A stretch of 64,000 bases of DNA from assembly GCA_002269645.1 (NCBI GenBank), contig NIVC01001066.1, forward strand, positions 186,001 through 250,000. The letters run 5' to 3'. This document shows, piece after piece, positions 30,187 through 61,512 of this stretch (its first letter is position 1; each line of letters begins with the position of its first letter). This DNA comes from Macrostomum lignano (taxonomy: Eukaryota). The translations under genes and the position numbers were made by a program. The notes under the pieces were generated by a model. It saw only the letters and a program-made list of their open reading frames with translations. It was not told where the DNA came from and did not search any database.

Positions 30187-30920
30187 TTAAAGGATAAATA
30201 AAAGGTGGCTGTGTCTGCATATCTATTGACTGGCGAAACTCAGATTTCCGGTTAATTGAGTGCGCGTTGGGATGTGCTCGAGCAGGGGGAAGTGGATAGG
30301 CTGGGTGGGGGTTACGGAGTGCAAACTGAGTGCCCGAACTGCCTGCCTGCGCATGCTACAGTTACTACATGATTACCGAACACCGTGTCCATTTGCAGGA
30401 TTTAAGTCAAATATTTGTTCCGGTCTTACACGGGTCACATCCTATATACTAAAAATGAGTTGTCTGTATGTGGGTAGGTATGCGATAGATTTCAGAAAAA
30501 ATGGCTCAACCGATTTTCTTCAAACTTGCACCATTCGATCAGAAATTTTCCTGGGACGGTACATGCATCTTGGCTAAAAAATTGCTCAATGATAAAGGGA
30601 TTAAATATTCGAAAAACATGCTTTTTTGCAAAGGTCAAGCAGCTCTTTCGACCTAAAATTCATTGTAAGAATGCTAGAGAAAAAAACTGACTGGCTGAAT
30701 TCTGATTGTCATAAAGATTGCATCACAACAAGTTGAAAACAGTGCCGAAGAAATGCACACACGACTTGATTAAAATTGCGTAACCAATATTGCTAACTTG
30801 AACTGAGACTGATACTGGCTGACTGAGAAATTGATTATGTCATAACTTTTTACCCCAATTGACTTGCTGTAAGAATTTAATTATAAGGGCCACAATTCAT
30901 GTACTCCAATTGAAAAGAGA

Positions 30921-30973
30921 TAGCCTAGATCCGAACAGACTGGACTGCCAACGTAGCGACCTGGGTTCGAATC
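30921..30973 (+). ncRNA. tRNA-like Pol III cassette (A box TAGCCTAG, B box GGTTCGAATC, downstream T-run); related copies at 41863-41915, 47969-48021, 50342-50394
   Basis: Four diverged copies, each just upstream of a minisatellite array; not a complete cloverleaf. Confidence 0.5.
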
Positions 30974-31039
30974 TTAGTAGTGCAAAATAATTTTTTTATA
31001 AAACACCTTGAAAACACGAAACTGCTAAACATAAAAAAG

Positions 31040-32680
31040 CACAATGTCAAACATAAAAGAGGCACCATGTCAAACATTACATGGGCACCATGTAAAACAA
31101 ATACGTGACTCTATGTCAAACATTAAAGAGCCACCATGTGAAACATTAAAGAGTCACCATTTCGAACATTAAAGAGCCACCACGTCGAACATTAAAGTGC
31201 CACCATGTCAAACGTAAAAGAGCCACCATGAAGAACATTAAAGAGCCACCATGCCAAACATAAAAGAGCCACTATGTCGAACATTAAAGAGCTAGCATGT
31301 CAAACATTAAAGAGCCACCATGTCGAACATTAAAGAGCCACCATTTCGAACATAAAAGAGCCGCCATGTAAAACATTAAAGAGCCACATTGTCAAACATA
31401 AAAGAGCCACCATGTAAGACATTTAAGAGCCATCATGTGAAACATTTAAGAGCCACCATGTCGAACATAAAAGAGCTACCATGTCAAACCTAAAAGAGCC
31501 ACCATGTCAAACCTAAAAGAGCCACCATGTCGAACATAAAAGAGCTACCATGTCAAACCTAAAAGAGCCACCATGTCGAACATAAACGAACCTTTATGTC
31601 GTACATTAAAGAGCCACCATGTCAAACATTAAAGAGCCACCATGTCAAACATAAAAGAGCCACAATGTCAAACATAGAAGAGCCACAATGTCAGATATTA
31701 AAAAGCCACCGTATCAAACATAAAAGAGTTACCATGTAGAACAAAAAAGAGCCACCATGTCGAACATAAAAGAGCCACCATGTCAAGCATAAAAGAGCCA
31801 CCATGTCAAACATTAAAGAGCCACCATGTCGAACATTAAAGAGCCACCATGTCAAGCATAAAAGAGCCACCATGTCAAACATTAAAGAGCCATGTCAAAC
31901 ACTAAAGAGCCAACATGTCGAACATAAAAGAGCCACCATGTCAAACATTAAAGAGCCACCATGTCAGACATTAAAGAGCCACCATGTCAAACATTAAAGA
32001 GCCACCATATCGAACACTAAAGAGCCACCATGTCAAACATATGTGACTCCATGTCGAATATATACGTGCCTCCATGTCACACATAAAAGGGCCACCATGT
32101 AAAACATATACATATGACTACATAACAAACATTAAACAGCCCACCATGTCGAACATTAAAGAGCCATCATGTCAAACATAAAAGAGCCACCATGTCAAAC
32201 ATTAAAGAGCCACCATGTCAGACATTAAAGAGCCACTATGTCAAACATAAAAGAGCCACCATGTCAAACATTAAAGAGCCACCATATCGAACACTAAAGA
32301 GCCACCATGTCAAACATATGTGACTCCATGTCAAATATATACGTGACTCCATGTCACACATAAAAGAGCCACCATGTAAAACATATACATATGACTACAT
32401 AACAAACATTAAACAGCCACCATGTCGAACATTAAAGAGCCATCATGTCAAACATAAAAGAGCCACCATGTCATAAATTAAAGACCCACCATGTCAAACA
32501 TTAAAGAGCCACCATGTCAAACATTAAAGAGCCACATGTCGAACATAAAAGAGCCACTTTGTCAAACATCTACGAGTCACCATGTCAAGCGTATACATGA
32601 CTCCATTTCAGACATTAAAGTGCCACCATGTCAAACATAAAAGAGCCACCAGCTCAAACATTAAAGAGTCACCATGTCAG
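31040..32680 (+). repeat. 23-bp minisatellite (CACCATGTCAAACATTAAAGAGC)n inside Helitron A
   Basis: Visible, diverged units. Confidence 0.93.
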
Positions 32681-32689
32681 ACACAAAAC

Positions 32690-33670
32690 AGCTATCTGGA
32701 GATGCGTGCTATCTGGGGGTGCTTGCTATCTGGGGGAATGCTTGCTATCTTGGGGGTTCTAGCTATCTGGGGGTGCTTGCTATTAGGTGGATGCTTGCTA
32801 TCTGGGGTGCCTGCTATCTTGGAGTGCTTGCTATCTGGAGATGCGTGCTATCTGGGGGTGCTTGCTATCTGGGGGTGCTTGCTATCTGGGGGTGCTTGCT
32901 ATCTGGGGGTGCTTGCTATTAGGTGGATGCTTGCTATCTGGGGTGCCTGCTATCTGGGGGTTCTTGCTATCTGGGGGTGCTTGCTATCTGGGGGTGCTTG
33001 CTATTAGGTGGATGCTTGCTATCTGGGGTGCCTGCTATCTGGGGGTGCTTGCTATCTGGAGATGCTTGCTATCTGGGGGTGCTTGCTATTAGGTGGATGC
33101 TTGCTATCTGGGGTGCCTGCTATCTGGGGGTGCTTGCTATCTAGAGATGCTTGCTATCTGGGGGTGCTTGCTATCTGGGGGTGCTTGCTATTAGGTGGAT
33201 GCTTGCTATTAGGTGGATGCTTGCTATCTGGGGGTGCTTGCTATTAGGTGGATGCTTGCTATCTGGGGGTGCTTGCTATCTGGAGATGCTTGCTATCTGG
33301 GGGTGCTTGCTATCTGGGGGTGCTTGCTATCTAAGGGTGCTTGCTATTAGGTGGATGCTTGCTATCTTGGGGTGCTTGCTATTAGGTGGATGCTTGCTAT
33401 CTGGGGTGCCTGCTATCTGGGGGTGCTTGCTATCTAGAGATGCTTGCTACTTGGGGTGCTTGCTATCTGGGGGTGCTTGCTATCTGGGGGTGCTTGCTAT
33501 CTAAGGGTGCTTGCTATTAGGTGGATGCTTGCTATCTGGGGTGCCTGCTATCTGGGGGTGCTTGCTATCTGGAGATGCTTGCTATCTGGGGATGCTTGCT
33601 ATCTAAGGGTGCTTGCTATTAGGTGGATGCTTGCTATCTGGGGGTGCTTGCTATCTGGGGGGTTGCTTGC
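32690..33670 (+). repeat. 17-bp minisatellite (GCTATCTGGGGGTGCTT)n inside Helitron A; remnants at ~47720-47920 and ~58430-58700
   Basis: Visible units. Confidence 0.93.
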
Positions 33671-34281
33671 TGTCCTGGGATATTTTTTTGCATTGCACTT
33701 CATTTGAGCAGTTTTTCTATTGTCTATGTGAAGGCTTTATTTGGCCGTCTTTTTGATACTTGTAGAGTGCCAGAGATTCTATCTAGATGCCCCCCATCGG
33801 GGGGCGAAGATTGCTAGTATTTATCTAATTGTGATTTGCGGTGCCAGCAGAAAAATTCTAATCCTGGACTCACTGAAAAACCGAGCCGCTGCAATTCGTC
33901 AACTGAAGCCCATAGTTCATCGATGGAAGTAGGTAAACCATTTGTGTCGTATAATTGCACCTACGAGCTACGCTCGTACAATGTGCTGATTAACTTTTTG
34001 CCTGTAAATTTAGGTTGCGATTTCAGGGGCCGGTTTTAACCTGCTCTGTAATCGTGTTTAGCCGACGGGGCCGCCCCCCTCCGCCCGTCTGTGCGTGCGG
34101 CCCGCGCGTGTGCATCCCTGCCGCAAGGTGGGGTGCTGGGTGCCGGCCGGCAGGCGGGGGTGTTGGGTTGGGGGTGGGCGGCGTCGGCCCCCTTTTATTT
34201 GTGCGCTCACGCTCTCTCGTGCGCGCTGCGAGAGCGCTTTGGCTCGTAAAATTTTTTTGCGACTATCTGGCTCTGGCTATC

Positions 34282-35298
34282 ATGCATCGTGTGGACCGAC
34301 TAACAGTCAAACAACTCAAGAGTGAGCTGGGTAGCCGAGGCCTCTCAACCGCAGGCAATAAGTCGGCCTTGCAAGCCAGACTGAGACAACACGAGGGGCA
34401 GTCACAGCTTCAAGACGGCGGGACATCGGCATTGACATCGGCATCGGCATCGCCCTGTGCGCAGGAGGAGCTCCAAGACCAAGGCCGGGACCCACGGGAG
34501 GCGGACCTGGACGGCGAGATTCGGCGGGCGCAGAAACGGCTGCAGCTCCTAGAGCTTCAAACACGCGAACGAGAGCTTCGTGAACGCGCCGTCGTGACTG
34601 CTCGTACAGAATCAGGTGAGCAGCAGAATCTTTTCGCTGAACTTATCAACCCAACAGGCCCCGTCAGCGCTAGAGCCAACCCCCGGCCGGTCGGGCAGCC
34701 GTGTCTACTCGTCAGAGACTTTGTCGATGATCTGTCAGGCCAGGCTGACGAGCTGCTCACCAGGGGCAGCTCTGGCGGCCTCGTGCTCAAGAAGTCGACG
34801 ACCAAGCTGGACGGCATGACAATTGGGCAGTGGTTCGCCGGCAGTATGAAGGTCCTGCTTCAGATACTTGAAGACACAGCGCCGCAGCTGACCAGCAAGG
34901 GCCAAGTGTACAGCACAACTGAGCAAGTCAAAGATTACGCCCAGTACAATGTCCAGGTGGCCGAGCTATTCGACAGATTCCCAGCGCACCGGGTGATCAG
35001 ATTCGACCATGACTACCGCCAGCACCGCGCAGCCAACAGCCTTCGCTGGGGCAAAGACTGCGCCCAGATGTCGATCAGGCACCTGCTCAGCATTAAGACG
35101 GACCAGTACAATCAGACAGCCAAGCGAAACCAGCCTAGCAACAAGAGCCGCGTCATGGGTCCGCGGACATCCTCAGGCCGCGAGCTGTGCTTGTCCTTCA
35201 ACAGCACCAACGGCTGCATGAGGAGCAACTGCCGATTCCTCCATGCCTGCCGAATCTGTGAGGGCAGCCACTCCGAGCAAAATCACGCAAAAAACTGA
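34282..35298 (+). CDS. Ngaro ORF1 (gag-like): N-terminal SAP domain, C-terminal Cys/His finger, 338 aa from first ATG
   Basis: LTVKQLKSELGSRGLSTAGNKSALQARL (SAP); CLSFNSTNGCMRSNCRFLHACRICEGSH. Confidence 0.85.
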   Translation: MHRVDRLTVKQLKSELGSRGLSTAGNKSALQARLRQHEGQSQLQDGGTSALTSASASPCAQEELQDQGRDPREADLDGEIRRAQKRLQLLELQTRERELRERAVVTARTESGEQQNLFAELINPTGPVSARANPRPVGQPCLLVRDFVDDLSGQADELLTRGSSGGLVLKKSTTKLDGMTIGQWFAGSMKVLLQILEDTAPQLTSKGQVYSTTEQVKDYAQYNVQVAELFDRFPAHRVIRFDHDYRQHRAANSLRWGKDCAQMSIRHLLSIKTDQYNQTAKRNQPSNKSRVMGPRTSSGRELCLSFNSTNGCMRSNCRFLHACRICEGSHSEQNHAKN

Positions 35299-35321
35299 GC
35301 AAGCGCGCCGACACGGCGCGC
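35289..35321 (+). promoter_or_regulatory. Candidate -1 programmed ribosomal frameshift signal at the gag/pol junction
   Basis: A_AAA_AAC heptamer in the gag frame just before TGA, 7-nt spacer, 8-bp all-GC hairpin GCGCGCCG-ACA-CGGCGCGC; the -1 frame is the pol frame. Confidence 0.75.
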
Positions 35322-35372
35322 GAAACCGATTTTACCCCTCCTGCTTTTAACTGCCTCGCTCAGCCCGCTCCC

Positions 35373-37934
35373 GTGCCCTGCATCGTCAAGCCTCCAGTGC
35401 GGAAGTCCGATCTGACGCAGCCAGTGGGCGATCTCTGCATCGACGCCTGGCGCTCCGAGCTTGTGGGCGACCCCGACGCTGATTTTATTCTCGACGGCAT
35501 CGAGAGCGGCTTCTCCATTGTCGATGACTTCGACTTTACGCCGTGTCTCTGCAGCAACTACCAGTCCGTCAACCGGAATCGCGACCAAGTCCAAGCTGTT
35601 ATCGGTGAAGAAATCCGGCTCGGGAGGTACGTCCCAGTCGTGGACAAGCCTGCGATGGTCTGTCCGCTGGGAGCCATTCCGAAAGACAGCTCCGGCATCC
35701 GGCTAATCCATGATTGCTCCGTCCCTCGCGGCTGCAGCCTGAACGATCACTATGCCCAACAACGGCGTCTCCGCTTCACCTCCGTCGACGAGGCCGTCAG
35801 GATGATGCAGCCCGGCTGGTTTATGGCAAAGGTGGACATCGCGTCAGCCTACCGCAGCGTGCCAATTTCTCCGCAGTGCTACCAAGCCACCGGCATCCAC
35901 TGGGACTTCGGCAATGGCTGCTCAACCTTCCTGGTGGATACGCGGTTACCATTCGGCAGCAGAGCCTCCGTCAGCATTTTCCATCGCCTCACGCAAGCGG
36001 CCCGGCGAATGATGTGTCGCAAGGGGTTCCTGGCAACCGTCGTTTTCATCGATGACTTCCTCGTCATGGCCAGGACGAAAGCCGAGTGTGACAGGGCCTA
36101 CCACGAGCTGCGCAACCTGCTCACCAGGCTTGGCTTCACCATCAACGAGAAAAAGTCGGTGCCGCCGACGACAAAGCTGCGATTCCTCGGCATTGACATC
36201 GACACCGTTCAAGCCAGTCTTTCCTTCCCAGCCGACAAAGCCGAAAAGCTTCAGCTTCTCCTTGACACCTGCCTCTCGCGGAGGAGCCTGTGCAAGGCGG
36301 AACTGCAGAAGCTGCTCGGGCACCTCAGCCACTTGTGCACTGCCGCCCAGCACGGGCGAACTTTCCTGCGGCCGCTGATCGAGCTGGTCAACAGCCTGGC
36401 GCATCCGTCCGACAGGGTCGGCGTCACGGAGGAGCTCCAGTCGCAGCTGAGGTGGTGGATGACCGCGTTGAGCACGCTGCCGCCTAGAGCTGCCTGGCCC
36501 TCGCGTCGGCCGGCTGGAGCGATTGAGTCTGACGCCTGTGACATTGGAGGCGGTGCTGTGCTGCATTTCGTCGACAGAGAACCGGTTTGGCTCTACATCG
36601 ACTGGCAGTCCGACTGTGATGGCGCGTTCAAGGAGCTGCACATCAACCTCAAGGAGTGCGCCGCCCCGCTGGTTGCGATTCTGCAGCACCAAGAAGCCTT
36701 CAGCGGCTGCTCGGTTGCAGTCTACACTGACAGCACCGCCGCCTGCGGCATCATTAACTCGGGTTCCGCCAAGCACCAAGGTATTGCCGACCTGCAGAAG
36801 CGCGTCGCCCTGACCTGCATTCAACGCGACATCATCGTCCGCGCGCACCATGTGCCTGGCCGCTTCCAGCTGCTCGCAGACCCGCTGTCCAGAGCGCATG
36901 ACCCCAGCCAGCTTGCCAACTTTCTGTTTCGCTTCTATGGCACCTGCTATGTGCCAACCAGCTTGCTTGCCTCCGCTTGCTTGAGCTCTGCCGCTGCCTC
37001 CCACCTTCTGTTTCAGGTCCGCCTCCTGTGGTCCCGGGTCCCGGCCTCTCCGCACCGGCACGTCGACTGCTCAGCCAAGGCTTCGCCAGCTCAACTCGCT
37101 CCGCCTACGCCAGCCAGTGCGCGTCCTGGATGCGATTCTGCGCCGCCCACAGACTTCAACCGCTGTCAGCGCAGCCCGCCGACGTGTGCAACTACCTGGC
37201 GGAGCTGGCGAACAACCGGCTGTTCTCAGTCAGCAGCCTATCCTGCCACCTCGCCGCCGTGTCTTGGCTCTACAAATCAAACAGCGTGGCTGACCCGACG
37301 AGGCAGCCACTGGTTCAGCTTGCCCTGCGCGGCGCCCGCCGGCTCCTCGGCGCCGCCCCAAGGAGCAAACGAGCGTTGCGGCCGGCCGACCTGCAGCGGC
37401 TGCACGGCGTGCTGCGACCTGAAGAGCCCAGGGACTGCGCATTCTGGTGCGCCTGCATCGTGGGCTGGTGGGCCATGCTACGGCGAGCCAACCTGTGCGT
37501 ATCCGGCCGGTTCGATCCGCAGCGAGACCTCAGTGCGAGCTGCATCCGGCCGTCAAGGGCGGGCGTCATCCTCGTCATTCCGAGGTCGAAGACCAACCAG
37601 TTCGGGGCGCGCCAGCACCGAGTTTTCTTGCCGCAGCTCCCAGACGGACATCCACTCTGCCCGGTCACCGCGCTCCAGAAGCAGCTGCGCATTAACCGAC
37701 CGCAGGACGCCCAGCATCACTTGTTCAGTACCCGAACCAGACGGTCCACCGCACCGCTCACCGCGCGCACCTTCGCGAGGCGCCTGTCCGCGGCACTTCG
37801 ACAGGCCGGGTTCGCCGAGCCAGCCAGGTTCTCTGGGCACTCGTTGCGTCGAGGTGGCGCTACATCCGCGGCGGAGGCCGGCATCCCCATCGATTCAATC
37901 ATGCGAGTCGGTGACTGGGCAAGCAGCGCTGTAG
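35373..37934 (+). CDS. Ngaro ORF2: reverse transcriptase + RNase H (no ATG start; frame open back through 35289)
   Basis: RLIHDCS, KVDIASAYR, LPFGSRAS, FIDDFL, FLGIDID; RNase H IESDACDIG, VYTDS, ADPLSR. Confidence 0.93.
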   Translation: MPCIVKPPVRKSDLTQPVGDLCIDAWRSELVGDPDADFILDGIESGFSIVDDFDFTPCLCSNYQSVNRNRDQVQAVIGEEIRLGRYVPVVDKPAMVCPLGAIPKDSSGIRLIHDCSVPRGCSLNDHYAQQRRLRFTSVDEAVRMMQPGWFMAKVDIASAYRSVPISPQCYQATGIHWDFGNGCSTFLVDTRLPFGSRASVSIFHRLTQAARRMMCRKGFLATVVFIDDFLVMARTKAECDRAYHELRNLLTRLGFTINEKKSVPPTTKLRFLGIDIDTVQASLSFPADKAEKLQLLLDTCLSRRSLCKAELQKLLGHLSHLCTAAQHGRTFLRPLIELVNSLAHPSDRVGVTEELQSQLRWWMTALSTLPPRAAWPSRRPAGAIESDACDIGGGAVLHFVDREPVWLYIDWQSDCDGAFKELHINLKECAAPLVAILQHQEAFSGCSVAVYTDSTAACGIINSGSAKHQGIADLQKRVALTCIQRDIIVRAHHVPGRFQLLADPLSRAHDPSQLANFLFRFYGTCYVPTSLLASACLSSAAASHLLFQVRLLWSRVPASPHRHVDCSAKASPAQLAPPTPASARPGCDSAPPTDFNRCQRSPPTCATTWRSWRTTGCSQSAAYPATSPPCLGSTNQTAWLTRRGSHWFSLPCAAPAGSSAPPQGANERCGRPTCSGCTACCDLKSPGTAHSGAPASWAGGPCYGEPTCAYPAGSIRSETSVRAASGRQGRASSSSFRGRRPTSSGRASTEFSCRSSQTDIHSARSPRSRSSCALTDRRTPSITCSVPEPDGPPHRSPRAPSRGACPRHFDRPGSPSQPGSLGTRCVEVALHPRRRPASPSIQSCESVTGQAAL

Positions 37935-38005
37935 AGCGGTACCTACCGCCTTCGGTTGAGCGCGGTGCGCCGCTGCGCCTGGCTTCACTCCTCCCCTCAG
38001 CGTGA
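36977..38005 (+). CDS. Ngaro ORF3: tyrosine recombinase overlapping ORF2
   Basis: AMLRRAN (Arg), SKTNQ (Lys), CPV, FSGHSLRRGGAT (HxxR), VGDWASSAVERY (catalytic Tyr). Confidence 0.93.
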   Translation: MLELCRCLPPSVSGPPPVVPGPGLSAPARRLLSQGFASSTRSAYASQCASWMRFCAAHRLQPLSAQPADVCNYLAELANNRLFSVSSLSCHLAAVSWLYKSNSVADPTRQPLVQLALRGARRLLGAAPRSKRALRPADLQRLHGVLRPEEPRDCAFWCACIVGWWAMLRRANLCVSGRFDPQRDLSASCIRPSRAGVILVIPRSKTNQFGARQHRVFLPQLPDGHPLCPVTALQKQLRINRPQDAQHHLFSTRTRRSTAPLTARTFARRLSAALRQAGFAEPARFSGHSLRRGGATSAAEAGIPIDSIMRVGDWASSAVERYLPPSVERGAPLRLASLLPSA

Positions 38006-38550
38006 CCTCCTCCCTGGTTTGGGATTTTTGGACTCGTTTCGTCCGCTGCCTTTGTCGCCACGCCTGTGCCTTCCCTCTTGCTGCTTTTGGCCCTGTTGGC
38101 TAAGGTTGCGATTTCAGGGGCCGGTTTTAACCTGCTCTGTAATCGTGTTTAGCCGACGGGGCCGCCCCCTCCGCCCGTCTGTGCGTGCGGCCCGCGCGTG
38201 TGCATCCCTGCCGCAAGGTGGGGTGCTGGGTGCCGGCCGGCAGGCGGGGGTGTTGGGTTGGGGGTGGGCGGCGTCGGCCCCCTTTTATTTGTGCGCTCAC
38301 GCTCTCTCGTGCGCGCTGCGAGAGCGCTTTGGCTCGTAAAATTTTTTTTTATTAATTTTCTTGTAATGCTTTTATTCCGTTGCTTCGTGACTTCCCTTTT
38401 AATCGCCTCAAATCCTAAAATATATTCGCTATCGCAGGACTCGTTTCGTCCGCTGCCTTTGTCGCCACGCCTGTGCCTTCCCTCTTGCTGCTTTTGGCCC
38501 TGTTGGCTAACTTGCTATTATAGACCATAAAGCCATGAACGTCCATCCAT

Positions 38551-41322
38551 TCCTCTCTTAATACTAAAGTTGGTGCGTTGTTTGTCTGTTTGTGTGATAC
38601 AAATCTCCTCCTAGACGACTTGCAAGTCAGCGTTGAAACTTATATTGAAAAACTGCAAATTTTCCGAGGATGGCAGTGGGCTATTTCAATTTTTTATTTT
38701 CACGTCTTAAGATCCCTAAAAAAGCAGAAGTAGTAAAACAATAGGGGAATATGAACATCTTGCGTAATTTATAATTATTGCGCCACAACAGCCGGCCTAT
38801 CTGTGCAGTGTATTCTTTCAACTGAAGGGGGTAAGCTGGGCCGGTTGACATCAATTTTTAGCGATTGCGCCACAACTGTGTGCACTGAGAACTTAACCAA
38901 ACCCCCTGTGTTGAGGGTGCTGGGGCGGCAGTGGAATTCAATGAATAAACTTGCAAGCCTTTTTAGCAGGCAGTGCACGTATGCGTACACTCGATAGTTC
39001 AATGCTTTAAATTGGGATATTTCAAACGCCAACTGTTCCTCGAGTTTTGAACTCTGAGAGAAGAGACTTATATTGCTGGAAAGATCTTTCAATGCTGACT
39101 TCGAGGATATAAGTTGTTTGCTTTAAATATGAAAGCAAAAAGCAAAGCAAAAGCAAAGACGATATTTCAATACTTTTAACTCTCTGCAAAGATTGTACTC
39201 ATTTTACGGGTTCAATGGGGGTTCGACCGACACCCCAACAGTTAGGGGGGGGGGTTGAATTTCTAACCTTCACTGCGTATTGGAAGGGGTCGGTCGCTGT
39301 GTATTGGAGGGTTGATTTAGATTGCGCAACTTTTTTCCTAATTTTACCGAGACTGATACTGAATGACTATGAAATTGGTTGCGCATTCAACTGATTCAAT
39401 TGGTTCAATTTTTTTATCGGCGCCTTTCAACACGCTGCTGTGTGTAGCTCTAACCCTAACCCTAACCCTAACCCTAACCATTGAATCCTGGGAGTTTATT
39501 CCCTTTGACGGAGAAAATTTCGATTAAGTCCAGTTTCACGGAGAGAATTTCAATGGTTTTCAGTTTCTTGGAGATGATTTCTGTCTTGCGGAGAGGATTT
39601 CGATGGTTTTCAGTTTCACGGAGAGGATTTCTGTTTCGTGGAGAGAATTTTGATGTATTTCTGTTTTACGGAGACAATTTTGATGGATTTTAGTTTCACG
39701 CAGAGGATTTCCTTGGAGTTCAGTTTCCCGGAGAGGATTTCTGTTTCGTGGAGAGAATTTTGATGTATTTCTGTTTTACGGAGACAATTTTGATGGATTT
39801 TAGTTTCACGCAGAGGATTTCCTTGGAGTTCAGTTTCCCGGAGAGGATTTCTGTTTCGTGAAGAGAATTTTGATGTATTTCTGTTTTACGGAGACAATTT
39901 TGATGGATTTTAGTTTCACGCAGAGGATTTCCTTGGAGTTCAGTTTCCCGGAGAGGATTTCTGTTTCGCGGAGAGGATTTCGATGGTGTTCAGTTTTGCG
40001 GTGAGGAGTTGGATGATGGGATTCAGTTAGTGGATTTCAGGGAATGGAATTCCGGTGATGGGAGTTCTTCCCCTTTCTCCTCCAGCGGAGGAGTTGGCCT
40101 CGTTAATACTAAAAGTGGTGCGATGTTTGTCTGTCTGTATGTTGCAATTTTTCTCCTAGACTACTTGCAACTCAGCGTTGAAACTTATATGGGTAAACTG
40201 CAAATTTTCCGGGTTGGGTTTATAGCTATTTTAATCTTTCATTTTTATATTTTAAGATCCCTAAAAAAGCAGAAATAATAAAACAATAGGGAATATGATC
40301 CACCTTGCGCAACTCTTAGTGATTGCGCCACAACAGCTGGCCTATCTGTGTAGTGTATTCTTTTAGCTAAAGGGGTGTAACTGGGCCAGTTGGCATCAAT
40401 TTTTAGTGATTACGCCACAACTTTCTCCTATCTCGGCAGTGTATTTTCTCTCCAATGGGGGAATGGGGGCATTCTCAGTGGCTGCGTGTGTACAATCGGA
40501 CCCTAGCTCACTGGCTGATTGTATAGACAATTGCGCAACGATATGTTTTCTGATTTTCAATAGGCAGCCCTGTGTATTTGTTGGACACTGTGTATTTGTT
40601 GGACAGTAAAATTCAATGAATAAACTTGCGAGCCTCCCACTGCTGCAGGCAGTGAACGGACACTCGATAGTTCAATTCCTTAAAACGGGAAATTTCAAAG
40701 CCAAACTGTTCCTTGAGTTTTAAACTTTAAGAGAAGAGACTTATATTGCTGGAAAGAGGTTGCAATGCTGAGTTAGGGGATATAAGTTGTTTGCTCTAAA
40801 TGTGAAAATTGAAAGCACAGCATTCAAAAAGTGATTTCCATACTTTTAACTTTTTGCAAAGATTGTACTCCATTTCGGGGGTTCAATGAGGGTTTGACAG
40901 ACTCCCAACAGTGGGGGGTTCAATTTCTAGCTGCACTGCGTATTCGAAGGGGTTCGGTCGCAGTGTATTGGAGGGTTGATTTAGATTGCGCAATTTTTTT
41001 GTTAACTTTAACCGAGGCTGATACTGACTGCCTGAGAAATAAGTTGCGCAATTTAATTGGTTCAATGTTTTAACGGCGCCTTTCAACACGCAGCTGTGTG
41101 TAGCTCTAACCCCTAACCATAACCAATGAATTCTGAGAGCTGGGTTCTGTTTGACGGAGAAATTTCGATTGAGTCCAGTTACACGGAGAGGATTTTCGCG
41201 GAGAGGATTTTGATGGTGTTCAGTTTCACGGAGACAATTTCTGTTTCGCGGAGAGTTCAGGAAATGGGATTCCGGTGATGGGAGTTCTTCCTCTTTCTCC
41301 TCCAGCGGAGGAGTTGGCCTCG
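38551..41322 (+). mobile_element. Two tandem diverged Helitron-like units (D ~38551-40102, E 40103-41322)
   Basis: Both start T..TAATACTAAA(A)GT(T/G)GGTGCG..TGTTTGTCTG and end with hairpin CTCCTCCAGCGGAGGAG + TTGGCCTCG|T; collinear internal similarity; D has 3x110-bp repeats at 39621-39960. Confidence 0.7.
39450..39479 (-). repeat. Interstitial telomeric (TTAGGG)5 inside unit D
   Basis: (CTAACC)5 on the + strand. Confidence 0.9.
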
Positions 41323-49417: not shown

Positions 49418-49463
49418 TTAGGGTTAGGGTTAGGGTTAGGGTTAGGGTTAGGGTTAGGGTTAG
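49418..49463 (+). repeat. Interstitial telomeric (TTAGGG)7 inside unit B
   Basis: Seven perfect units plus TTAG. Confidence 0.92.
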
Positions 49464-50451
49464 AAAGTAGACAGATTTTTTAAGATTTCAAGGCTTATGG
49501 GAGCATCGCTGAGATGTCAAGGGGGGAGTTGATATGTTAAGGCTTGTGGGGGGGGATTGCTGACATGTCAAGGCTTACACGGGTACTGGTAGCGTACTGA
49601 AGCATACTGGTAGAAGTAGCTCTGAAAGAAGGCAAGTATGGTTGAATTTCAATGTCTGTTATAAAATTCTGCACAAACATGTTTTATTGGTACATAAGCC
49701 TGGAATTAAAATGAGAATTCGATTCCTAGCCCCCCTCCCTAAGAATTTTTTTTCATTTTAAAGGATTCGTCCCTTGCTTATTGGCCACCCCGAAGGGGGG
49801 CGCTAGTCCATATACTAAAAATGGTCTGTTTGTGTGTGCGTGTGTGTGTGATCGATTTTAGCAAAAACGGCTGAACCGATTTTCTTCGAACCTGCACTGT
49901 TCGATCAGAAATTATTCCGTGACGGTACATGCATCGTGGCTAAGAAATTGCTCGATGCTAAAGGGATTAAATATTCGAAAAACATGCTTTTTTGCAAAGG
50001 TCAAGCATCGAAATGCATTGTAAGAATGCTAGCAGAAAAACTGACTGGTTGAATTCTGATTCTGAAATAGATTGCATCACAATACACTTTATTTATCGTC
50101 TGTGTACTGGCTGAATTTGACACTCAATTGAATTGCGTCACAGCTTTGAGTGTGAAAGCATAGCGCAGTACTGAATTTATATTACGTAACCATATTGTAA
50201 ACTTTCATAGACACTGGTACTGACTTGCCTAAGAAATTGATTATGTCATAACTGCTTCGTGAGACTTTTTACTCTACCTGACTTGGTGTGAGTGTTGAAT
50301 TATATAAGTGGTACAACATCACTGATAACTTCGATGAGAGCTAGCCTAGAGCTAAACAGACCAGACTGCTAATGCAGCGACCTAGGTTCGAATCTAAGTA
50401 GTTTAAAATTTTTTATTAAAAGGTTTTATTAAAGGACTAAATAAAAACACT

Positions 50452-53400
50452 TAGATTACTGCACTCGATAAGCCAAGGATTATTGCTATTAATAAACCAA
50501 GGACTACTGCACTCGATAAACCAAGGACTATTGCTCTTGGCAAACCAAGGATTACTGCACTCAAGAAGCCAAGGATTATTGCACTTGATAAACCAAGGAT
50601 TATTTCACTTGATAAACCAAGGATTATTGCACTTGATAGGCCAAGGATTACTGCACTTGATAAACCAAGGATTATTGCACTTGATAAGCCAAGGATTACT
50701 GCGCTAGATAAACCAAGGATTATTGCACTTGATAAACCAAGGATTATTGCACTTAATAAACCAAGGATTATTGCACTTGATAAACCAAGGATTATTGCAC
50801 TTGATAGGCCAAGGATTACTGCACTTGATAAACCAAGGATTATTGCACTTGATAGGCCAAAGATTACTGCGCTTGATAAGCCATGGATTATTGCACTTGA
50901 TAAACCAAGGATTATTGCACTTGATAAGCCAAGGATTACTGCGCTTGATAAACCAAGGATTATTGCACTTGATAAACCAAGGATTATTGCAGTTGATAAG
51001 CCAAGGATTATTGCACTTGATAAACCAAGGATTATTTCACTTGATAAACCAAGGATTATTGCACTTGATAGGCCAAGGATTACTGCACTTGATAAACCAA
51101 GGATTATTGCACTTGATAAGCCAAGGATTACTGCGCTAGATAAACCAAGGATTATTGCACTTGATAAACCAAGGATTATTGCACTTAATAAACCAAGGAT
51201 TATTGCACTTGATAAACCAAGGATTATTGCACTTGATAGGCCAAGGATTACTGCACTTGATAAACCAAGGATTATTGCACTTGATAGGCCAAGGATTACT
51301 GCACTTGATAAACCAAGGATTATTGCACTTGATAGGCCAAAGATTACTGCGCTTGATAAGCCATGGATTATTGCACTTGATAGTAAAGAATGTTGCACTT
51401 GATAAGCCAAGGATTAATGCACTGGATTATTCAAGGATTATTGCTATTAATAAACCAAGGACTACTGCACTCGATAAGCCAAGGATTATTGCTCTTAATA
51501 AACCAAGGATTACTGCACTTGGAAAACTAAGGATTACTGCACTCGATACACCAAGGATTATTGCTCTTGATAAACCAAGGATTATTGCACTTGATAAGCC
51601 AAGGATTACTGCGCTTGATAAACCAAGGATTATTGCACTTGATAAACCAAGGATTATTGCACTTGATAAACAAAGGATTATTGCACTTGATAAACCAAGG
51701 ATTATTTCACTTGATAAACCAAGGATTATTGCACTTGATAAACAAATATTGCACTTGATAAACCAAGGATTATTGCACTTGATAAACCAAGGATTATTGC
51801 ACTTGATAAGCCAAGGATTACTGCGCTTGATAAACCAAGGATTATTGCACTTGATAAACCAAGGATTATTGCAGTTGATAAGCCAAGGATTATTGCACTT
51901 GATAAACCAAGGATTATTTCACTTGATAAACCAAGGATTATTGCACTTGATAGGCCAAGGATTACTGCACTTGATAAACCAAGGATTATTGCACTTGATA
52001 AGCCAAGGATTACTGCGCTAGATAAACCAAGGATTATTGCACTTGATAAACCAAGGATTATTGCACTTAATAAACCAAGGATTATTGCACTTGATAAACC
52101 AAGGATTATTGCACTTGATAGGCCAAGGATTACTGCACTTGATAAACCAAGGATTATTGCACTTGATAGGCCAAAGATTACTGCGCTTGATAAGCCATGG
52201 ATTATTGCACTTGATAGTAAAGAATGTTGCACTTGATAAGCCAAGGATTAATGCACTGGATTATTCAAGGATTATTGCTATTAATAAACCAAGGACTACT
52301 GCACTCGATAAGCCAAGGATTATTGCTCTTAATAAACCAAGGATTACTGCACTTGGAAAACTAAGGATTACTGCACTCGATACAACAAGGATTATTGCTC
52401 TTGATAAACCAAGGATTATTGCACTTGATAAGCCAAGGATTACTGCGCTTGATAAACCAAGGATTATTGCACTTGATAGGCCAAGGATTACTGCACTTGA
52501 TAAACCAAGGATTATTGCACTTGATAGGCCAAAGATTACTGCGCTTGATAAACCAAGGATTATTGCACTTGATAAGTCAAGGATTACTGCGCTTGATAAA
52601 CCAAGGATTATTGCACTTGATAAACAAAGGATTATTGCACTTGATAAACCAAGGATTATTTCACTTGATAAACCAAGGATTATTGCACTTGATAAACAAA
52701 TATTGCACTTGATAAACCAAGGATTATTGCACTTGATAAACCAAGGATTATTGCACTTGATAAGCCAAGGATTACTGCGCTAGATAAACCAAGGATTATT
52801 GCACTTGATAAACCAAGGATTATTGCAGTTGATAAGCCAAGGATTATTGCACTTGATAAACCAAGGATTATTTCACTTGATAAACCAAGGATTATTGCAC
52901 TTGATAGGCCAAGGATTACTGCACTTGATAAACCAAGGATTATTGCACTTGATAAACCAAGGATTATTGCACTTGATAAGCCAAGGATTACTGCGCTTGA
53001 TAAACCAAGGATTATTGCACTTGATAGGCCAAGGATTACTGCACTTGATAAACCAAGGATTATTGCACTTGATAGGCCAAAGATTACTGCGCTTGATAAA
53101 CCAAGGATTATTGCACTTGATAAGTCAAGGATTACTGCGCTTGATAAACCAAGGATTATTGCACTTGATAAACAAAGGATTATTGCACTTGATAAACCAA
53201 GGATTATTTCACTTGATAAACCAAGGATTATTGCACTTGATAAACAAATATTGCACTTGATAAACCAAGGATTATTGCACTTGATAAGCCAAGGATTACT
53301 GCGCTTGATAAACCAAGGATTATTGCACTTGATAAACCAAGGATTATTGCAGTTGATAAGCCAAGGATTATTGCACTTGATAAACCAAGGATTATTTCAC

Positions 53401-56400
53401 TTGATAAACCAATGATTATTGCACTTGATAGGCCAAGGATTACTGCACTTGATAAACCAAGGATTATTGCACTTGATAAGCCAAGGATTACTGCGCTAGA
53501 TAAACCAAGGATTATTGCACTTGATAAACCAAGGATTATTGCACTTAATAAACCAAGGATTATTGCACTTGATAAACCAAGGATTATTGCACTTGATAGG
53601 CCAAGGATTACTGCACTTGATAAACCAAGGATTATTGCACTTGATAGGCCAAAGATTACTGCGCTTGATAAGCCATGGATTATTGCACTTGATAGTAAAG
53701 AATGTTGCACTTGATAAGCCAAGGATTAATGCACTGGATTATTCAAGGATTATTGCTATTAATAAACCAAGGACTACTGCACTCGATAAGCCAAGGATTA
53801 TTGCTCTTAATAAACCAAGGATTACTGCACTTGGAAAACTAAGGATTACTGCACTCGATACACCAAGGATTATTGCTCTTGATAAACCAAGAATTATTGC
53901 ACTTGATAAACCAAGGATTACTGCGCTTGATAAACCAAGGATTATTGCACTTGATAAACCAAGGATTATTGCAGTTGATAAGCCAAGGATTATTGCACTT
54001 GATAAACCAAGGATTATTTCACTTGATAAACCAAGGATTATTGCACTTGATAAACAAATATTGCACTTGATAAACCAAGGATTATTGCACTTGATAAACC
54101 AAGGATTATTGCACTTGATAAGCCAAGGATTATTGCACTTGATAGGCCAAGGATTACTGCACTTGATAAACCAAGGATTATTGCACTTAATAAGCCAAGG
54201 ATTACTGCGCTAGATAAACCAAGGATTATTGCACTTGATAAACCAAGGATTATTGCACTTGATAAACCAAGGATTATTGCACTTGATAAACCAAGGATTA
54301 TTGCACTTGATAAACAAATATTGCACTTGATAAACCAAGGATTATTGCACTTGATAAACCAAGGATTATTGCACTTGATAAGCCAAGGATTATTGCACTT
54401 GATAGGCCAAGGATTACTGCACTTGATAAACCAAGGATTATTGCACTTGATAAGCCAAGGATTACTGCGCTAGATAAACCAAGGAATATTGCACTTGATA
54501 AACCAAGGATTATTGCACTTGATAAACCAAGGATTATTGCACTTGATAAACCAAGGATTATTGCACTTGATAAGCCAAGGATTACAGCGCTTGATAAGCC
54601 ATGGATTATTGCACTTGATAAGCCAAGGATTAATGCACTGGATTATTCAAGGATTATTGCTATTAATAAACCAAGGACTACTGCACTCGATAAACCAAGG
54701 ATTATTGCTCTTAATAAACCAAGGATTACTGCACTTGGAAAACTAAGGATTACTGCACATGATAAACCAAGGATTATTGCTCTTGGCAAACCAAGGATTA
54801 CTGCACTCGATAAGCCAAGGATTATTGCACTTGATAAACCAAGGATTATTGCACTTGATAAACCAAGGATTATTGCACTTTATAAGCCAAAGATTACTGC
54901 ACTTGATAAACCAAGGATTATTGCACTTGATAAACCAAGGATTATTGCACTTGATTAATCAAGGATTATTGCTATTAATAAACCAAGGATTATTGCACTT
55001 GATAAACCAAGGATTATTGCACTTGATAAGCCAAGGATTACTGCGCTAGATAAACCAAGGATTATTGCACTTGATAAACCAAGGATTATTGCAGTTGATA
55101 AGCCAAGGATTATTGCACTTGATAAACCAAGGATTATTTCACTTGATAAACCAAGGATTATTGCACTTGATAGGCCAAGGATTACTGCACTTGATAAACC
55201 AAGGATTATTGCACTTGATAAACCAAGGATTATTGCACTTGATAAGCCAAGGATTACTGCGCTTGATAAACCAAGGATTATTGCACTTGATAGGCCAAGG
55301 ATTACTGCACTTGATAAACCAAGGATTATTGCACTTGATAGGCCAAAGATTACTGCGCTTGATAAACCAAGGATTATTGCACTTGATAAGTCAAGGATTA
55401 CTGCGCTTGATAAACCAAGGATTATTGCACTTGATAAACAAAGGATTATTGCACTTGATAAACCAAGGATTATTTCACTTGATAAACCAAGGATTATTGC
55501 ACTTGATAAACAAATATTGCACTTGATAAACCAAGGATTATTGCACTTGATAAGCCAAGGATTACTGCGCTTGATAAACCAAGGATTATTGCACTTGATA
55601 AACCAAGGATTATTGCAGTTGATAAGCCAAGGATTATTGCACTTGATAAACCAAGGATTATTTCACTTGATAAACCAATGATTATTGCACTTGATAGGCC
55701 AAGGATTACTGCACTTGATAAACCAAGGATTATTGCACTTGATAAGCCAAGGATTACTGCGCTAGATAAACCAAGGATTATTGCACTTGATAAACCAAGG
55801 ATTATTGCACTTAATAAACCAAGGATTATTGCACTTGATAAACCAAGGATTATTGCACTTGATAGGCCAAGGATTACTGCACTTGATAAACCAAGGATTA
55901 TTGCACTTGATAGGCCAAAGATTACTGCGCTTGATAAGCCATGGATTATTGCACTTGATAGTAAAGAATGTTGCACTTGATAAGCCAAGGATTAATGCAC
56001 TGGATTATTCAAGGATTATTGCTATTAATAAACCAAGGACTACTGCACTCGATAAGCCAAGGATTATTGCTCTTAATAAACCAAGGATTACTGCACTTGG
56101 AAAACTAAGGATTACTGCACTCGATACACCAAGGATTATTGCTCTTGATAAACCAAGAATTATTGCACTTGATAAACCAAGGATTACTGCGCTTGATAAA
56201 CCAAGGATTATTGCACTTGATAAACCAAGGATTATTGCAGTTGATAAGCCAAGGATTATTGCACTTGATAAACCAAGGATTATTTCACTTGATAAACCAA
56301 GGATTATTGCACTTGATAAACAAATATTGCACTTGATAAACCAAGGATTATTGCACTTGATAAACCAAGGATTATTGCACTTGATAAGCCAAGGATTATT

Positions 56401-57690
56401 GCACTTGATAGGCCAAGGATTACTGCACTTGATAAACCAAGGATTATTGCACTTAATAAGCCAAGGATTACTGCGCTAGATAAACCAAGGATTATTGCAC
56501 TTGATAAACCAAGGATTATTGCACTTGATAAACCAAGGATTATTGCACTTGATAAACCAAGGATTATTGCACTTGATAAACAAATATTGCACTTGATAAA
56601 CCAAGGATTATTGCACTTGATAAACCAAGGATTATTGCACTTGATAAGCCAAGGATTATTGCACTTGATAGGCCAAGGATTACTGCACTTGATAAACCAA
56701 GGATTATTGCACTTGATAAGCCAAGGATTACTGCGCTAGATAAACCAAGGAATATTGCACTTGATAAACCAAGGATTATTGCACTTGATAAACCAAGGAT
56801 TATTGCACTTGATAAACCAAGGATTATTGCACTTGATAAGCCAAGGATTACAGCGCTTGATAAGCCATGGATTATTGCACTTGATAAGCCAAGGATTAAT
56901 GCACTGGATTATTCAAGGATTATTGCTATTAATAAACCAAGGACTACTGCACTCGATAAACCAAGGATTATTGCTCTTAATAAACCAAGGATTACTGCAC
57001 TTGGAAAACTAAGGATTACTGCACATGATAAACCAAGGATTATTGCTCTTGGCAAACCAAGGATTACTGCACTCGATAAGCCAAGGATTATTGCACTTGA
57101 TAGGCCAAGGATTACTGCGCTTGATAAACCAAGGATTATTGCACTTGATAAACCAAGGATTATTGCAGTTGATAAGCCAAGGATTATTGCACTTGATAAA
57201 CCAAGGATTATTTCACTTGATAAACCAAGGATTATTGCACTTGATAAACAAATATTGCACTTGATAAACCAAGGATTATTGCACTTGATAAGCCAAGGAT
57301 TACTGCGCTAGATAAACCAAGGATTATTGCACTTGATAAACCAAGGATTATTGCACTTAATAAACCAAGGATTATTGCACTTGATAAACCAAGGATTATT
57401 GCACTTAATAAACCAAGGATTATTGCACTTGATAAACAAAGGATTATTGCACTTGATAAACAAAGGATTATTGCACTTGATAAACCAAGGATTATTGCAC
57501 TTGATAAACCAAGGATTATTGCACTTTATAAGCCAAAGATTACTGCACTTGATAAACCAAGGATTATTGCACTTGATAAACCAAGGATTATTGCACTTGA
57601 TTAATCAAGGATTATTGCTATTAATAAACCAAGGATTATTGCACTAGCTGAGAAGCTGATTACTGCGCTGTCTAAAAAAGGGATTATTGC
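50452..57690 (+). repeat. 24-bp satellite variant (ATAAACCAAGGATTATTGCACTTG) with a 2,266-bp duplication
   Basis: Identical ORFs recur at +2266 (53228/55494, 53515/55781, 54489/56755). Confidence 0.95.
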
Positions 57691-57700
57691 ACTCGCTGAG

Positions 57701-58349
57701 TGCGCTGACCTGCTGGCCAAGGCTGGCTCCGCCGGCGCGCTATTGGGGCCGGGCCCGGGTGCCCCCATCCCCGCCTCGGTGATCAATTCCCGCGTTAAGC
57801 GCTGGACTGACTCCGAGCATCTCCGCAGGTGGCACGACACCCGGAATTGTAGGCAATCCCGTGCTGCCGTCCCCTGTCCCTCTCCTCTCCTGCGTAGAGC
57901 CCTCCTCAGGCTCAACCGCAGAGACCTCAGAGCAGTTAGCATGGCCCTCTCCGGGCATGGCTGCTTCTCTCGCCACCGCTTCCTTCAGGGCCAGGTACCC
58001 GAGGAGCGGTGCCCCTTCTGCCGCTCAGGCAGTGAAAACGCCGAGCATTTTATCTGCCACTGCCCGGTTTTCACCAGGGCCAGGCTTACTCACCTCGGGC
58101 CAAACCCGGTTCTCTCCGACGTTTGCAGGCCCGAGAGCATCCCGCTGCTCGCCCGGTACCTCAGGGACACCGGACGAGCTGATTTCTTCCCCACCGTCGG
58201 TGAGGAGGACCGCGCTGCAGGCGAGACCGACGGGTCCCCCTGAGCAACACCACTTCAACGGAAGTCGTTGGTCGCCAGGGGCTAGCGGAATGGGCGGTCT
58301 CCTCCGCCTCCTCGCTGCATCCGCCGGACGCCCCCTGCAGCTAAGTCAA
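57701..58349 (+). mobile_element. 5'-truncated RNase H-bearing non-LTR retrotransposon (I/R1 group)
   Basis: ADLLAKAGS (RNase H end), LSGHG, CPFC...ENAEHFICHCP knuckle; 12-bp TSD GCACTCGCTGAG at 57689-57700 and 58350-58361. Confidence 0.85.
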
Positions 58350-60388
58350 GCACTCGCTGAGACGTGGATTGTTGCACAACCTGAGAAAGCGAATATTGCA
58401 TTAGCGGAAGTAACATTTGCACTAGCTACTTGCTGTCTCGTGGATGCTTGCTCTCGAGGGGGGATACTTGCTATTTGGGAGAGGGGGTGCTGGCTGCATG
58501 CATGGGATTCTTTCAATCCAGGGATGCTTGCTATTTAGGGATTCTTGCTATCTGCAGGATGCTTGCTATCTGGGTGGATGCTTCTATAATATCTGGGGGG
58601 TGCTTGCTATCTGTGGTGATTCTTGCTATGAGCATTAGAGGATGCTTGCTATCTGCGATTGTTCACTTTTGGAGGGGGTTGCTTGCTGTCTTGGGAATAT
58701 TTTCTATTTAGGGAAACGATATTTTGTTGACTGTTTGTTAATTTTAGAGAAAAAGTGATTTTTTAATTTTGCAAACATCTTAGTCCGTGACAAGTTTACA
58801 CGAATAAGGTGATTTTTAAAATGTGAAGAAGGATTTAGTGTTTAAGAAAATGTGTTTTTTTATTGTTTTCCATGAACTATTTTTGCTCCTTTCTTATTGG
58901 GCGCCCCGAAGGGGGGCCGCACTAGATTGCTAGTCCATATACTAAAAATCCGGTACTTAAAATATTCCGCTAAACTACATTTCATACTCCTGCAGACAAC
59001 TCCTCGATTCGAATGTCGTCGCTCCATTCGTGGACCAAACAGCACCTGTGTTCAGAAGCAGCCCGGTGACTTTTGAGCCAGATACTTTGCCACGGACCAT
59101 GCAGAATGACGGCTATAGCTGCGGTGTGTTCGTCTGTCTGTATGCCACGGCTGTTGCAACTGGATCACCGCTACACTTCAGAAACGACACAGGATCCCTA
59201 AAAAAGTATAGGTGTCACATCTGGCAGGTTTTCCAGAATTACAGTCAAGGAGGAAGCCAGGCGACCTGCAGCACGTGCAACAGGATGGTACCTGATGCTT
59301 GTGCTAGAAATCGGACGATTGACTGGGTGGGTAGCAGCTAGTACGCTTGCTATATTGACTACACTTTAAAGGCTTTACGAGCGTACAATAGTTATGCTGC
59401 TCTCTTCGTTGAAGTTGTTCTTTCCGGAAATAGGCTAATCTACGAGTATTAACGATATATCGCCGATAAGTAGCTAGTACTAAAACCATTTCACTTGTAG
59501 GTAGCCAACAGTGGCAATAAAAGCTAAAAAGGAAGTATATATAAATTAACCATTACTGATATGCTAAATAAAATTAGGGCAATCCCATTTAACACTGAAA
59601 TTAAATTCCTTACTACAGATCGAATGCCCATCCTGCCTGAATTGGTACCACGACAAATGCGTGGCCAGTGGCCCGACCGACACCTTTATCTGTTCGAGCT
59701 GCCAAAACCTTTTTTCGATCTGAACGAACGAAGCAACTGCAAAATACGTAGTGAATTTAAGCAGTGCTTTTTTAATTTTACGAGTACATCTAGACTGTTT
59801 CTTAAAGCATACTAGGTAATCGCGATCGTATATTAGGAATTACGAATCGTGCATCTCATCGTTCCTGCAATCGCACAGTTTTTATTGTTATAATTTTCCT
59901 TTACAAACTCTCATACTCCATCAGCCAGGTGCGGATCCAGGAATTTCTTGAGTGGGGCCTAATGCAATGCTAGATCACCGAGGGCCTTGGGGCCGGATTG
60001 GAAGGGCCGGATCTGGCCCTGGGGCCGAGGGCTGTTGACCCCCTGCTACAGTATAAGTCTTAAATTAAAAGTAAGTTAATCCTCATATAGCTTCTGAACA
60101 TTGCAAGGCGAGGCAATAAATAGAATGTACTGCTTGCTTAGTATTGCTTAGGAAAGGCCATTTTTCGGGAAGCAGAGTATTAATTGCAACCCCTAATTAG
60201 ATCCGCAACCTGCCTTCTGTGAGCTATATACGAGAGCTATAGAATTTCGCGTTCCTCGTTGTCTATACTTTTCTGAATGCACCAACATCCGAACAATTAA
60301 TTTAACAATAAACGAGTCCCAAACAACGTTGTTGCCTTCGTGTGTAAAATTTATGAGAAAGAAATAACGTTTCCTATCAAAATAGAAC

Positions 60389-61465: not shown

Positions 61466-61512
61466 ATGGACGTCAGTTTGGATGATCTTATCAAGCAGAA
61501 AAAAGTGTCAAT
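61466..61512 (+). CDS. Probable first coding exon of an ALYREF/POLDIP3-like mRNA export adaptor
   Basis: aaaATG context; MDVSLDDLIKQKK matches the N-terminal UAP56-binding motif (MDMSLDDII); GTAAGC donor. Later exons not found in the window. Confidence 0.5.

Follow-up and report, generated by a model that had tools for sequence, protein, structure and literature searches.

Can a protein-coding gene lie hidden in pieces within nested transposons, and is it then still a gene? The question was raised by a 64,000-nucleotide stretch of the flatworm Macrostomum lignano (GenBank assembly GCA_002269645.1, contig NIVC01001066.1, positions 186,001 to 250,000 of the forward strand; this whole stretch is called the window, and all positions are counted from its first letter). 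An earlier note on this DNA had claimed a transposon-borne gene for a SUMO protease ending in a PHD finger, scattered over 29 kb (30399-59723). We find that the split frame is a real Ulp1/SENP-like C48 protease module followed by a PHD finger, and that the locus is a 5′-truncated, Helitron-broken relic within a non-autonomous Mutator-like element (MULE), not a working gene.

The pieces were joined by script, deleting one inserted Helitron (Helitron A) and applying two splices, 33928/58996 and 59326/59619, both with canonical gt...ag ends. The 588 nt obtained form an open frame of 195 codons, with zero stops and zero frameshifts. The internal part of the element is laid out as follows:

30188-30398, plus strand: internal left region, either the end of an upstream intron (ttgcag/G acceptor at 30398) or a deletion junction
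30399-30439, plus strand: exon 1, first part, DLSQIFVPVLHGS and the CA of the catalytic His14 codon
30440-33817, plus strand: Helitron A, inside the His14 codon, between host A30439 and host T33818
33818-33928, plus strand: exon 1, second part, the T of the His14 codon, then IYLIVICGASRKILILDSL...HRW and AA, up to the phase-2 donor
33929-58995, plus strand: intron 1, about 170 bp originally, 25 kb now through nested elements
58996-59326, plus strand: exon 2, with Gln87 (59102-59104), Cys93 (59120-59122) and, from 59267 on, the first PHD half
59327-59618, plus strand: intron 2, 292 bp, phase 0, gtgggt...ctacag
59619-59723, plus strand: exon 3, the second PHD half, up to Cys189 (59700-59702), then the stop codon TGA
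59724-60388, plus strand: 3′ internal region of the element, without a significant open reading frame (ORF)

Deleting Helitron A rejoins CA/T into a His codon and reads out ...FVPVLHGSHIYLIVICGASRKILILDSL, as the earlier note had it; A30439 and T33818 are the host letters on either side of the insertion. Both sites of intron 1 are in phase 2 (donor AA/gtaggt at 33928, acceptor ctcctgcag/A at 58995/58996) and both sites of intron 2 in phase 0 (donor TGG/gtgggt at 59326, acceptor ttactacag/ATC at 59618/59619). The Asp31 codon (33867-33869) lies in the second part of exon 1, QNDGYSCGVFVC is located within exon 2, and the stop TGA occupies 59721-59723. Upstream of exon 1, translation gives an in-frame ATG at 30369-30371 and a stop 22 codons before 30399; the spacing between exon 1 and the left terminal repeats of the carrier is only 211 bp.

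Three M. lignano gene models in UniProt are 98-100% identical to the translated exons: A0A1I8HHF3 (P0001), A0A1I8HGJ8 (P0105) and A0A1I8J039 (P0106). The junction HRWK/QLLD, corresponding to the phase-2 splice proposed earlier between 33928 and 58995, is present in two of them (P0001 and P0105, which both match KPIVHRWK, the end of the second part of exon 1), and TIDW/IECP, the phase-0 splice said to complete a C4HC3 PHD finger, in all three. As the models share these junctions, independent annotation has picked the same splice sites, and both proposed splices are confirmed. All three models are 5′-partial and lack the His/Asp exon, and P0106 results from nothing more than read-through of intron sequence directly ahead of exon 2, at window position 58976. 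The differences among the three proteins amount to two substitutions and one terminal frameshift. In P0105, a 1-base deletion in a T-run just past the last PHD cysteine (window 59703-59745 compared) turns ...QNLFSI-stop into ...QNFFRSERTKQLQIT, which matches the downstream sequence of the window in another frame; this frameshift means that at least one other copy or allele is decaying.

Relatives were collected in an HMMER scan of 1.84 billion representative proteins, which yielded 97 matches at E ≤ 10−3. The M. lignano fragment cluster was the sole close match, the next best being 36% identical. No other close protein was found in 15 billion sequences, nor any intact close copy among public proteins, and a profile search (A1) of a 5.8-billion-protein set yielded just three proteins, without any further copy from a flatworm. 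The distant relatives combining C48 and PHD are 21-48% identical to the peptide, mostly around 30%. Those that can be named come from teleosts (Labeo, Gadus, Trachinotus, Brachyhypopomus) and from Branchiostoma floridae, Holothuria, the oyster Pinctada, Ciona and the hydrozoan Clytia, mostly as 'uncharacterized' proteins. Peptidase_C48 is matched by 63 of the 96 relatives and PHD by 58; the order is always C48 then PHD, the latter at the extreme C-terminus. Across an alignment of 21 sequences, Q87, C93, G94 and six of the zinc ligands do not vary, and H14, W15, D89, C142, W161, W170 and C189 are conserved in at least 90% of the sequences. Conservation of catalytic and PHD residues across such distant animals suggests that the intact module is under selection.

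The earlier note had proposed a profile search of the spliced peptide, and its outcome was split. Pfam Peptidase_C48 (PF02902) matched the 195-aa peptide with 43.3 bits (E = 5.1×10−11), well above the curated cut-off of 20.7 bits, but the PHD profile (PF00628) gave 16.6 bits only, below its cut-off of 24. The C48 match spans no more than profile positions 84-192 of 217, so that the N-terminal subdomain (the first ~83 profile positions, i.e. the N-terminal third) is missing from the peptide. The rest of the domain, or a transposase, was searched for by tblastn with 104 relatives, a query set that included full-length C48 domains and the MULE transposase fusion described below, at E ≤ 10−3 and at E ≤ 10. 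Nothing credible was detected beyond 58996-59723 and 33906-33929, the latter being the 8-residue end of the second part of exon 1, and the internal left region (30188-30398) gave no tblastn similarity to N-terminal C48 or transposase.

Within the part that remains, the His-Asp-Cys triad and the oxyanion Gln reported earlier are indeed present: H14, D31, Q87 and C93 align with the catalytic HW, LDS and Q.D..SCG motifs of 20 relatives. The catalytic His is followed here by Ile15, at a position where at least 90% of alignment A1 has Trp. In Ulp1 and SENP structures, the Trp after the catalytic His lines the Gly-Gly tunnel. An AlphaFold2 model of the peptide (pLDDT 81.6) had Ulp1 and SENP1/5/2 as its top Foldseek matches, and the family profile matches SENP1/2/5 and Ulp1 at 10−28 to 10−25 (about 10−28 for SENP1).

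As to the PHD finger, the phase-0 splice completes a full set of C4HC3 ligands (C142, C145, C164, C167, H172, C175, C186, C189) with PHD-type spacing and the conserved Trp ahead of the His-x2-Cys motif, and W161 and W170 are nearly invariant among relatives. PF00628 is matched by the 58 relatives mentioned above at E ≤ 10−3, the best at 6×10−9. The C-terminal part of the family profile matches solved PHD fingers at 10−9 to 10−7 (KAT6A, DPF3, Alfin-like, BPTF, TAF3, Spp1), and the AlphaFold2 model separately matches the AL3 PHD (TM 0.67) and the BPTF PHD. The PHD assignment is thus supported at the level of the family, by profile and predicted structure. The resemblance to H3K4me readers is only a lead.

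The subthreshold PHD score of the peptide alone is what one might expect if an open frame in repeat-rich DNA had acquired fortuitous motifs by chance. We give this explanation next to no probability: it is refuted by the C48 score (E = 5×10−11, above the cut-off), by 97 homologs at E ≤ 10−3 with the same two-domain order, by annotated M. lignano proteins 98-100% identical to the exons, and by a structure model matching both the Ulp1/SENP and the PHD folds.

Is the gene then functional? Along the lines of the earlier note, it would be a hidden gene that is expressed across a 25-kb intron and produces a chromatin-reading deSUMOylase, by which the transposon escapes silencing that depends on SUMO. 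All four pieces read as one open frame, the catalytic residues and zinc ligands are intact and conserved in distant animal relatives, an ATG is available in frame at 30369, and gene models share the same junctions. Against this stands Helitron A, which is exonic. Its first letters are TCCTATATACTAAAAATG, and at its other end a CCCCCCATCGGGGGG hairpin precedes ...GATTGCTAG; written as TCCTATA...CCCCCCATCGGGGGGCGAAGATTGCTAG, it has the 5′ TC and, after the hairpin, the 3′ CTAG of a Helitron (5′-TC, hairpin and 3′-CTRR, insertion between A and T, no target-site duplication). It carries 23-bp (31027-32683) and 17-bp (32691-33671) satellites, and its 5′ part recurs at 41376 and 49810. Removal of Helitron A by splicing was ruled out, its ends being TC...AG and not GT...AG. 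With its position inside the His codon and without splice sites at its ends, it leaves no way for an mRNA to regain the frame at the His-Ile junction. In addition, the first ~83 C48 profile positions are missing, Trp15 is replaced by Ile, and the gene models are all 5′-partial, devoid of the His/Asp exon, one of them being intron read-through. With no transposase, no N-terminal C48 region and Helitron A in the His codon, this copy encodes nothing functional. A reading of the locus as an intact gene does not hold, and expression of a working enzyme from this locus is very improbable.

What carried the module to this place? The region is bounded by the following features:

29445-29453, no strand: left target-site duplication (TSD) ATGACTGCC, an identical 9-mer just outside the end of the terminal inverted repeat (TIR)
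29454-30187, plus strand: left TIR, a 95-bp unique terminus and 3.6 copies of a 178-bp repeat
60389-61190, minus strand: right TIR, the 178-bp repeat in 4.0 copies and, outermost, the 95-bp terminus
61191-61199, no strand: right TSD ATGACTGCC, the same 9-mer as on the left

The element thus extends from 29454 to 61190, that is 31.7 kb at present and about 3.4 kb without its nested inserts. Its TIR arms, 734 and 802 nt long, are 99% complementary over 573 nt (tandem array of the left arm at 29549-30187 according to TRF), and the window has exactly two occurrences of the 28-nt terminus, against 0 expected by chance. A TSD of about 9 bp (8-11) and long TIRs, both expected of a MULE, are present at this locus; 9-bp TSDs and long TIRs are the signature of the Mutator superfamily. 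We conclude that the carrier is a Mutator-like element and the Helitrons later intruders, and that the module was, as the earlier note had claimed, borne by a transposon and split by nested insertions. No MULE transposase domain was found in the window, either with Pfam or by tblastn with the transposase of P0023, the B. floridae relative described below. As it encodes no transposase, the element can only be a non-autonomous member. Ginger1 as the carrier was ruled out by the 9-bp TSD and by the lack of an integrase domain in all 96 relatives.

About 270 bp beyond the right MULE end there is a host exon (61466-61513): it has an ATG start, encodes MDVSLDDLIKQKKVSM and is followed by gtaag. At such a distance, the element is inserted in a probable promoter or 5′ region, as MULEs often are.

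How did a C48-PHD module come to lie between MULE termini? The most informative relative is the B. floridae protein XP_035667341 (P0023, 1430 aa), which consists of a FAR1 DNA-binding domain, a MULE transposase, C48 and PHD, and aligns to residues 5-191 of the peptide with 30% identity (E = 1.9×10−6). We consider, with a probability of roughly two in three, that the element arose by internal deletion from an autonomous MULE in which the C48-PHD module formed the end of the transposase gene or followed it, and that it depends on a transposase supplied in trans. The autonomous ancestor would have encoded a MULE transposase with C48-PHD at or near its C-terminus, as in the amphioxus relative and in the MuDR elements of hydra and lancelet. 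The transposase and the N-terminal third of the protease would then have been lost; internal deletion is the usual origin of non-autonomous cut-and-paste elements. The ~3.4-kb element inserted 270 bp upstream of the host gene start, and was later hit by Helitron A in the catalytic His codon and by a DIRS retroelement and a ~20-kb Helitron/satellite concatemer in intron 1. It could be mobilised only by a transposase acting in trans and able to recognise its TIRs.

Alternatively, a genomic fragment of three exons and two introns may have been captured, in the manner of Pack-MULEs, from a C48-PHD gene of the host or of another transposable element, the module never having belonged to the coding capacity of this MULE lineage. 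The fragment indeed has an abrupt start, ~210 bp away from the TIR repeats, and it contains introns, as is the case when DNA itself is captured; the element has no transposase, and only one of the 96 relatives is visibly fused to a MULE transposase. That MULEs acquire gene fragments is documented in PMC6446971 and PMC6431247. Against capture, no full-length parental gene was found among M. lignano proteins, or elsewhere at more than 36% identity. Canonical host SENPs are not known to have a C-terminal PHD finger. Finally, the C48 plus PHD arrangement is that of P0023 and of the Mutator and Ginger1 transposases described in PMC2836005. Capture of a foreign fragment therefore appears rather unlikely to us.

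Several points nevertheless weigh against a deletion derivative of an autonomous MULE. Merlin elements make TSDs of 8-9 bp. Rehavkus also makes a 9-bp TSD (PMC6446971). The MULE transposase domain is recognisable in that single relative out of 96, and many of the others are short gene models. No autonomous M. lignano copy was seen, so that the deletion origin rests on structure and distant relatives. Although the gene is dead, its frame is free of stops and frameshifts, which implies a recent disruption or little elapsed time. Finally, the three near-identical models could be homeologs or haplotypes of one locus and not transposed copies; the M. lignano genome is neopolyploid.

In the intact relatives, the protease would most probably be an active cysteine isopeptidase of clan CE that acts on a ubiquitin-like modifier, with the PHD finger as a chromatin tether of the methyl-lysine-reader type. 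Among SUMO, NEDD8 and ubiquitin, our best guess for the modifier cleaved would be SUMO, favoured by the similarity to SENP1/2. One may speculate further that the C48 plus PHD pair of animal transposons acts as a chromatin-targeted deSUMOylase, an anti-silencing enzyme countering SUMO-dependent piRNA/SETDB1 heterochromatin; the PHD finger, of the H3K4me-reader type, would direct the enzyme to the element's own chromatin or to integration sites. M. lignano is a flatworm that uses PIWI in its stem cells, and the relic would then be the fossil of a transposon anti-silencing system. We hold this proposal to be improbable.

The module is also found in other contexts. It is fused to an ALS2CR8 domain in Ciona intestinalis (P0024/P0110), and a C48 domain is accompanied by a SET domain in the metagenomic protein P0035. 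The protease module appears to combine with several chromatin or DNA-binding partners. Around two metagenomic relatives (L001 and L002), the neighbouring ORFs had no informative Pfam matches, and hence provided no linkage to a transposase.

The growth of intron 1 from about 170 bp to 25 kb is accounted for by two further insertions:

34012-38509, plus strand: DIRS-like retroelement, nested in intron 1, with Pfam matches in its ORFs
38555-58950, plus strand: Helitron-like head-to-tail concatemer, about four units, roughly 20 kb, approximate coordinates

The surviving pieces of the original intron are, approximately, 33929-34011, 38510-38554 and 58951-58995. The DIRS-like element has three apparently intact ORFs (a SAP-domain protein, a reverse transcriptase/RNase H and a tyrosine recombinase) and an internal junction of its two termini, which are repeated at 34012 and 38103 and again at 38031-38102 and 38438-38509; the element may be a young, active copy. 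The GC content is 60-64% in the 34-38 kb stretch that holds it, compared to ~40% around. In the concatemer, unit junctions lie near 40103, 41321, 49806 and 58935. At 49805/49806 and 58934/58935, the 3′ end runs straight into the next 5′ end (CTAG followed by TCCATATACTAAAAAT), and the array terminates in a 16-bp stub of a Helitron 5′ end (58935-58950). It also carries a 15.6-kb satellite of 24/48-bp units (41989-57645), and looks like an inserted rolling-circle multimer or a read-through product. Short telomere-like (TTAGGG)n tracts are present in it at about 39448-39480 and 49419-49465.

Other features of the window lie to the left of the element. Two HSP70 genes are arranged head-to-head (280-2190, minus strand, and 6141-8057, plus strand) within a ~3.15-kb inverted duplication (187-3335 and 4996-8150, spacer 1.66 kb), whose arms are 100% identical save one 6-nt indel. 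On either side of the whole unit lies an array of a 22-bp repeat, the two in inverted orientation (1-178 and 9023-9988). Arms this alike suggest that the duplication is very recent or that gene conversion is still going on. At 22079-26087, three consecutive ORFs on the plus strand (199, 257 and 812 aa) have no Pfam match, in a region with a strong AT skew (0.26). Two tandem repeats were also noted, a 30-bp one in 28.6 copies inside a 272-aa ORF (10694-11547) and a 57-bp one in 19.6 copies (18607-19721). An Rfam scan of 28000-64000 gave no match.

For the locus itself, little is at stake, as it is dead, truncated cargo in a heavily nested transposon; it does show the speed at which Helitrons, DIRS elements and satellites pile up on one another in the M. 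lignano genome. The Ulp1-like plus PHD module, for its part, is widespread in animals, from a hydrozoan, an oyster, a sea cucumber and amphioxus to teleosts, and now a flatworm. In the literature we consulted, it is covered only by one 2010 paper, with a figure panel and a short discussion, and by the Repbase notes cited there. Results on the intact proteins would bear on whether DNA transposons manipulate SUMO or ubiquitin-like signalling, in post-excision repair or in the escape from silencing.

How does this relic compare with known systems? According to Bao, Kapitonov and Jurka (Mobile DNA 2010, PMC2836005), an Ulp1 domain is part of the coding capacity of Mutator elements in hydra, in lancelet and in several plants, and the Ulp1 plus PHD modules of Mutator and Ginger1 transposases can be aligned. 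For the MuDR families of Hydra magnipapillata and B. floridae, that text cites Repbase Reports by Bao & Jurka (2008/2009), and it proposes that Ulp1 plays a role in transposition or repair via ubiquitin/SUMO pathways. We found no experimental test of this role in the literature, and neither Ulp1 nor C48 is mentioned in the MULE survey of Dupeyron et al. 2019. Our literature search returned no description of M. lignano MULEs or Helitrons, which a Mobile DNA 2025 paper does not treat.

The hydra and lancelet MuDR elements resemble the window element in their animal host, Mutator-type carrier, 9-bp TSD and long TIRs, and in having C48 directly before a C4HC3 PHD finger at the extreme C-terminus. 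Unlike them, the window copy has neither transposase nor N-terminal C48 subdomain, shows Ile instead of Trp at the position following the catalytic His, contains introns, and is broken by nested Helitron and DIRS insertions. Ginger1 elements (e.g. Ginger1-9_HM, with an integrase-like transposase, Ulp1 and PHD) bear the same accessory C-terminal module, but their transposase is Gypsy-integrase-like according to PMC2836005. The TSD of the window element is 9 bp, whereas that source reports 4 bp for Ginger2 families and 5 bp for TDD-4/5, and compares the TSDs of Ginger1 with those of Ginger2.

Among plants, the KI-MULEs/Kaonashi and ULP1-MULEs of Arabidopsis, melon, rice and maize are also MULEs with an Ulp1-like C48 domain (Hoen et al. 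2006; van Leeuwen et al. 2007, both cited by PMC2836005). By description, many of their copies are non-autonomous or degenerate, as here; they differ by their plant lineages and by the fact that a PHD fusion is not a described hallmark. The host Ulp1, SENP1, SENP2 and SENP5 are the best matches of the catalytic part in sequence and fold, with an identity of only 15-24%. To our knowledge, the catalytic domain of host SUMO proteases is complete and has both tunnel tryptophans, and no PHD finger follows it at the C-terminus; the peptide of the window, by comparison, is devoid of the N-terminal subdomain. The locus is reminiscent of plant Pack-MULEs as well, being non-autonomous, with a gene fragment between long TIRs and near the 5′ end of a host gene. 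No parental host gene for the cargo was found in public protein sets and, unlike that of Pack-MULEs, this cargo belongs to a module otherwise native to transposases. We conclude that a C48 plus PHD pair on an animal Mutator-type element is of an already known kind, and that its flatworm host (Platyhelminthes, Macrostomorpha) is, as far as the literature we found goes, a new record for the module.

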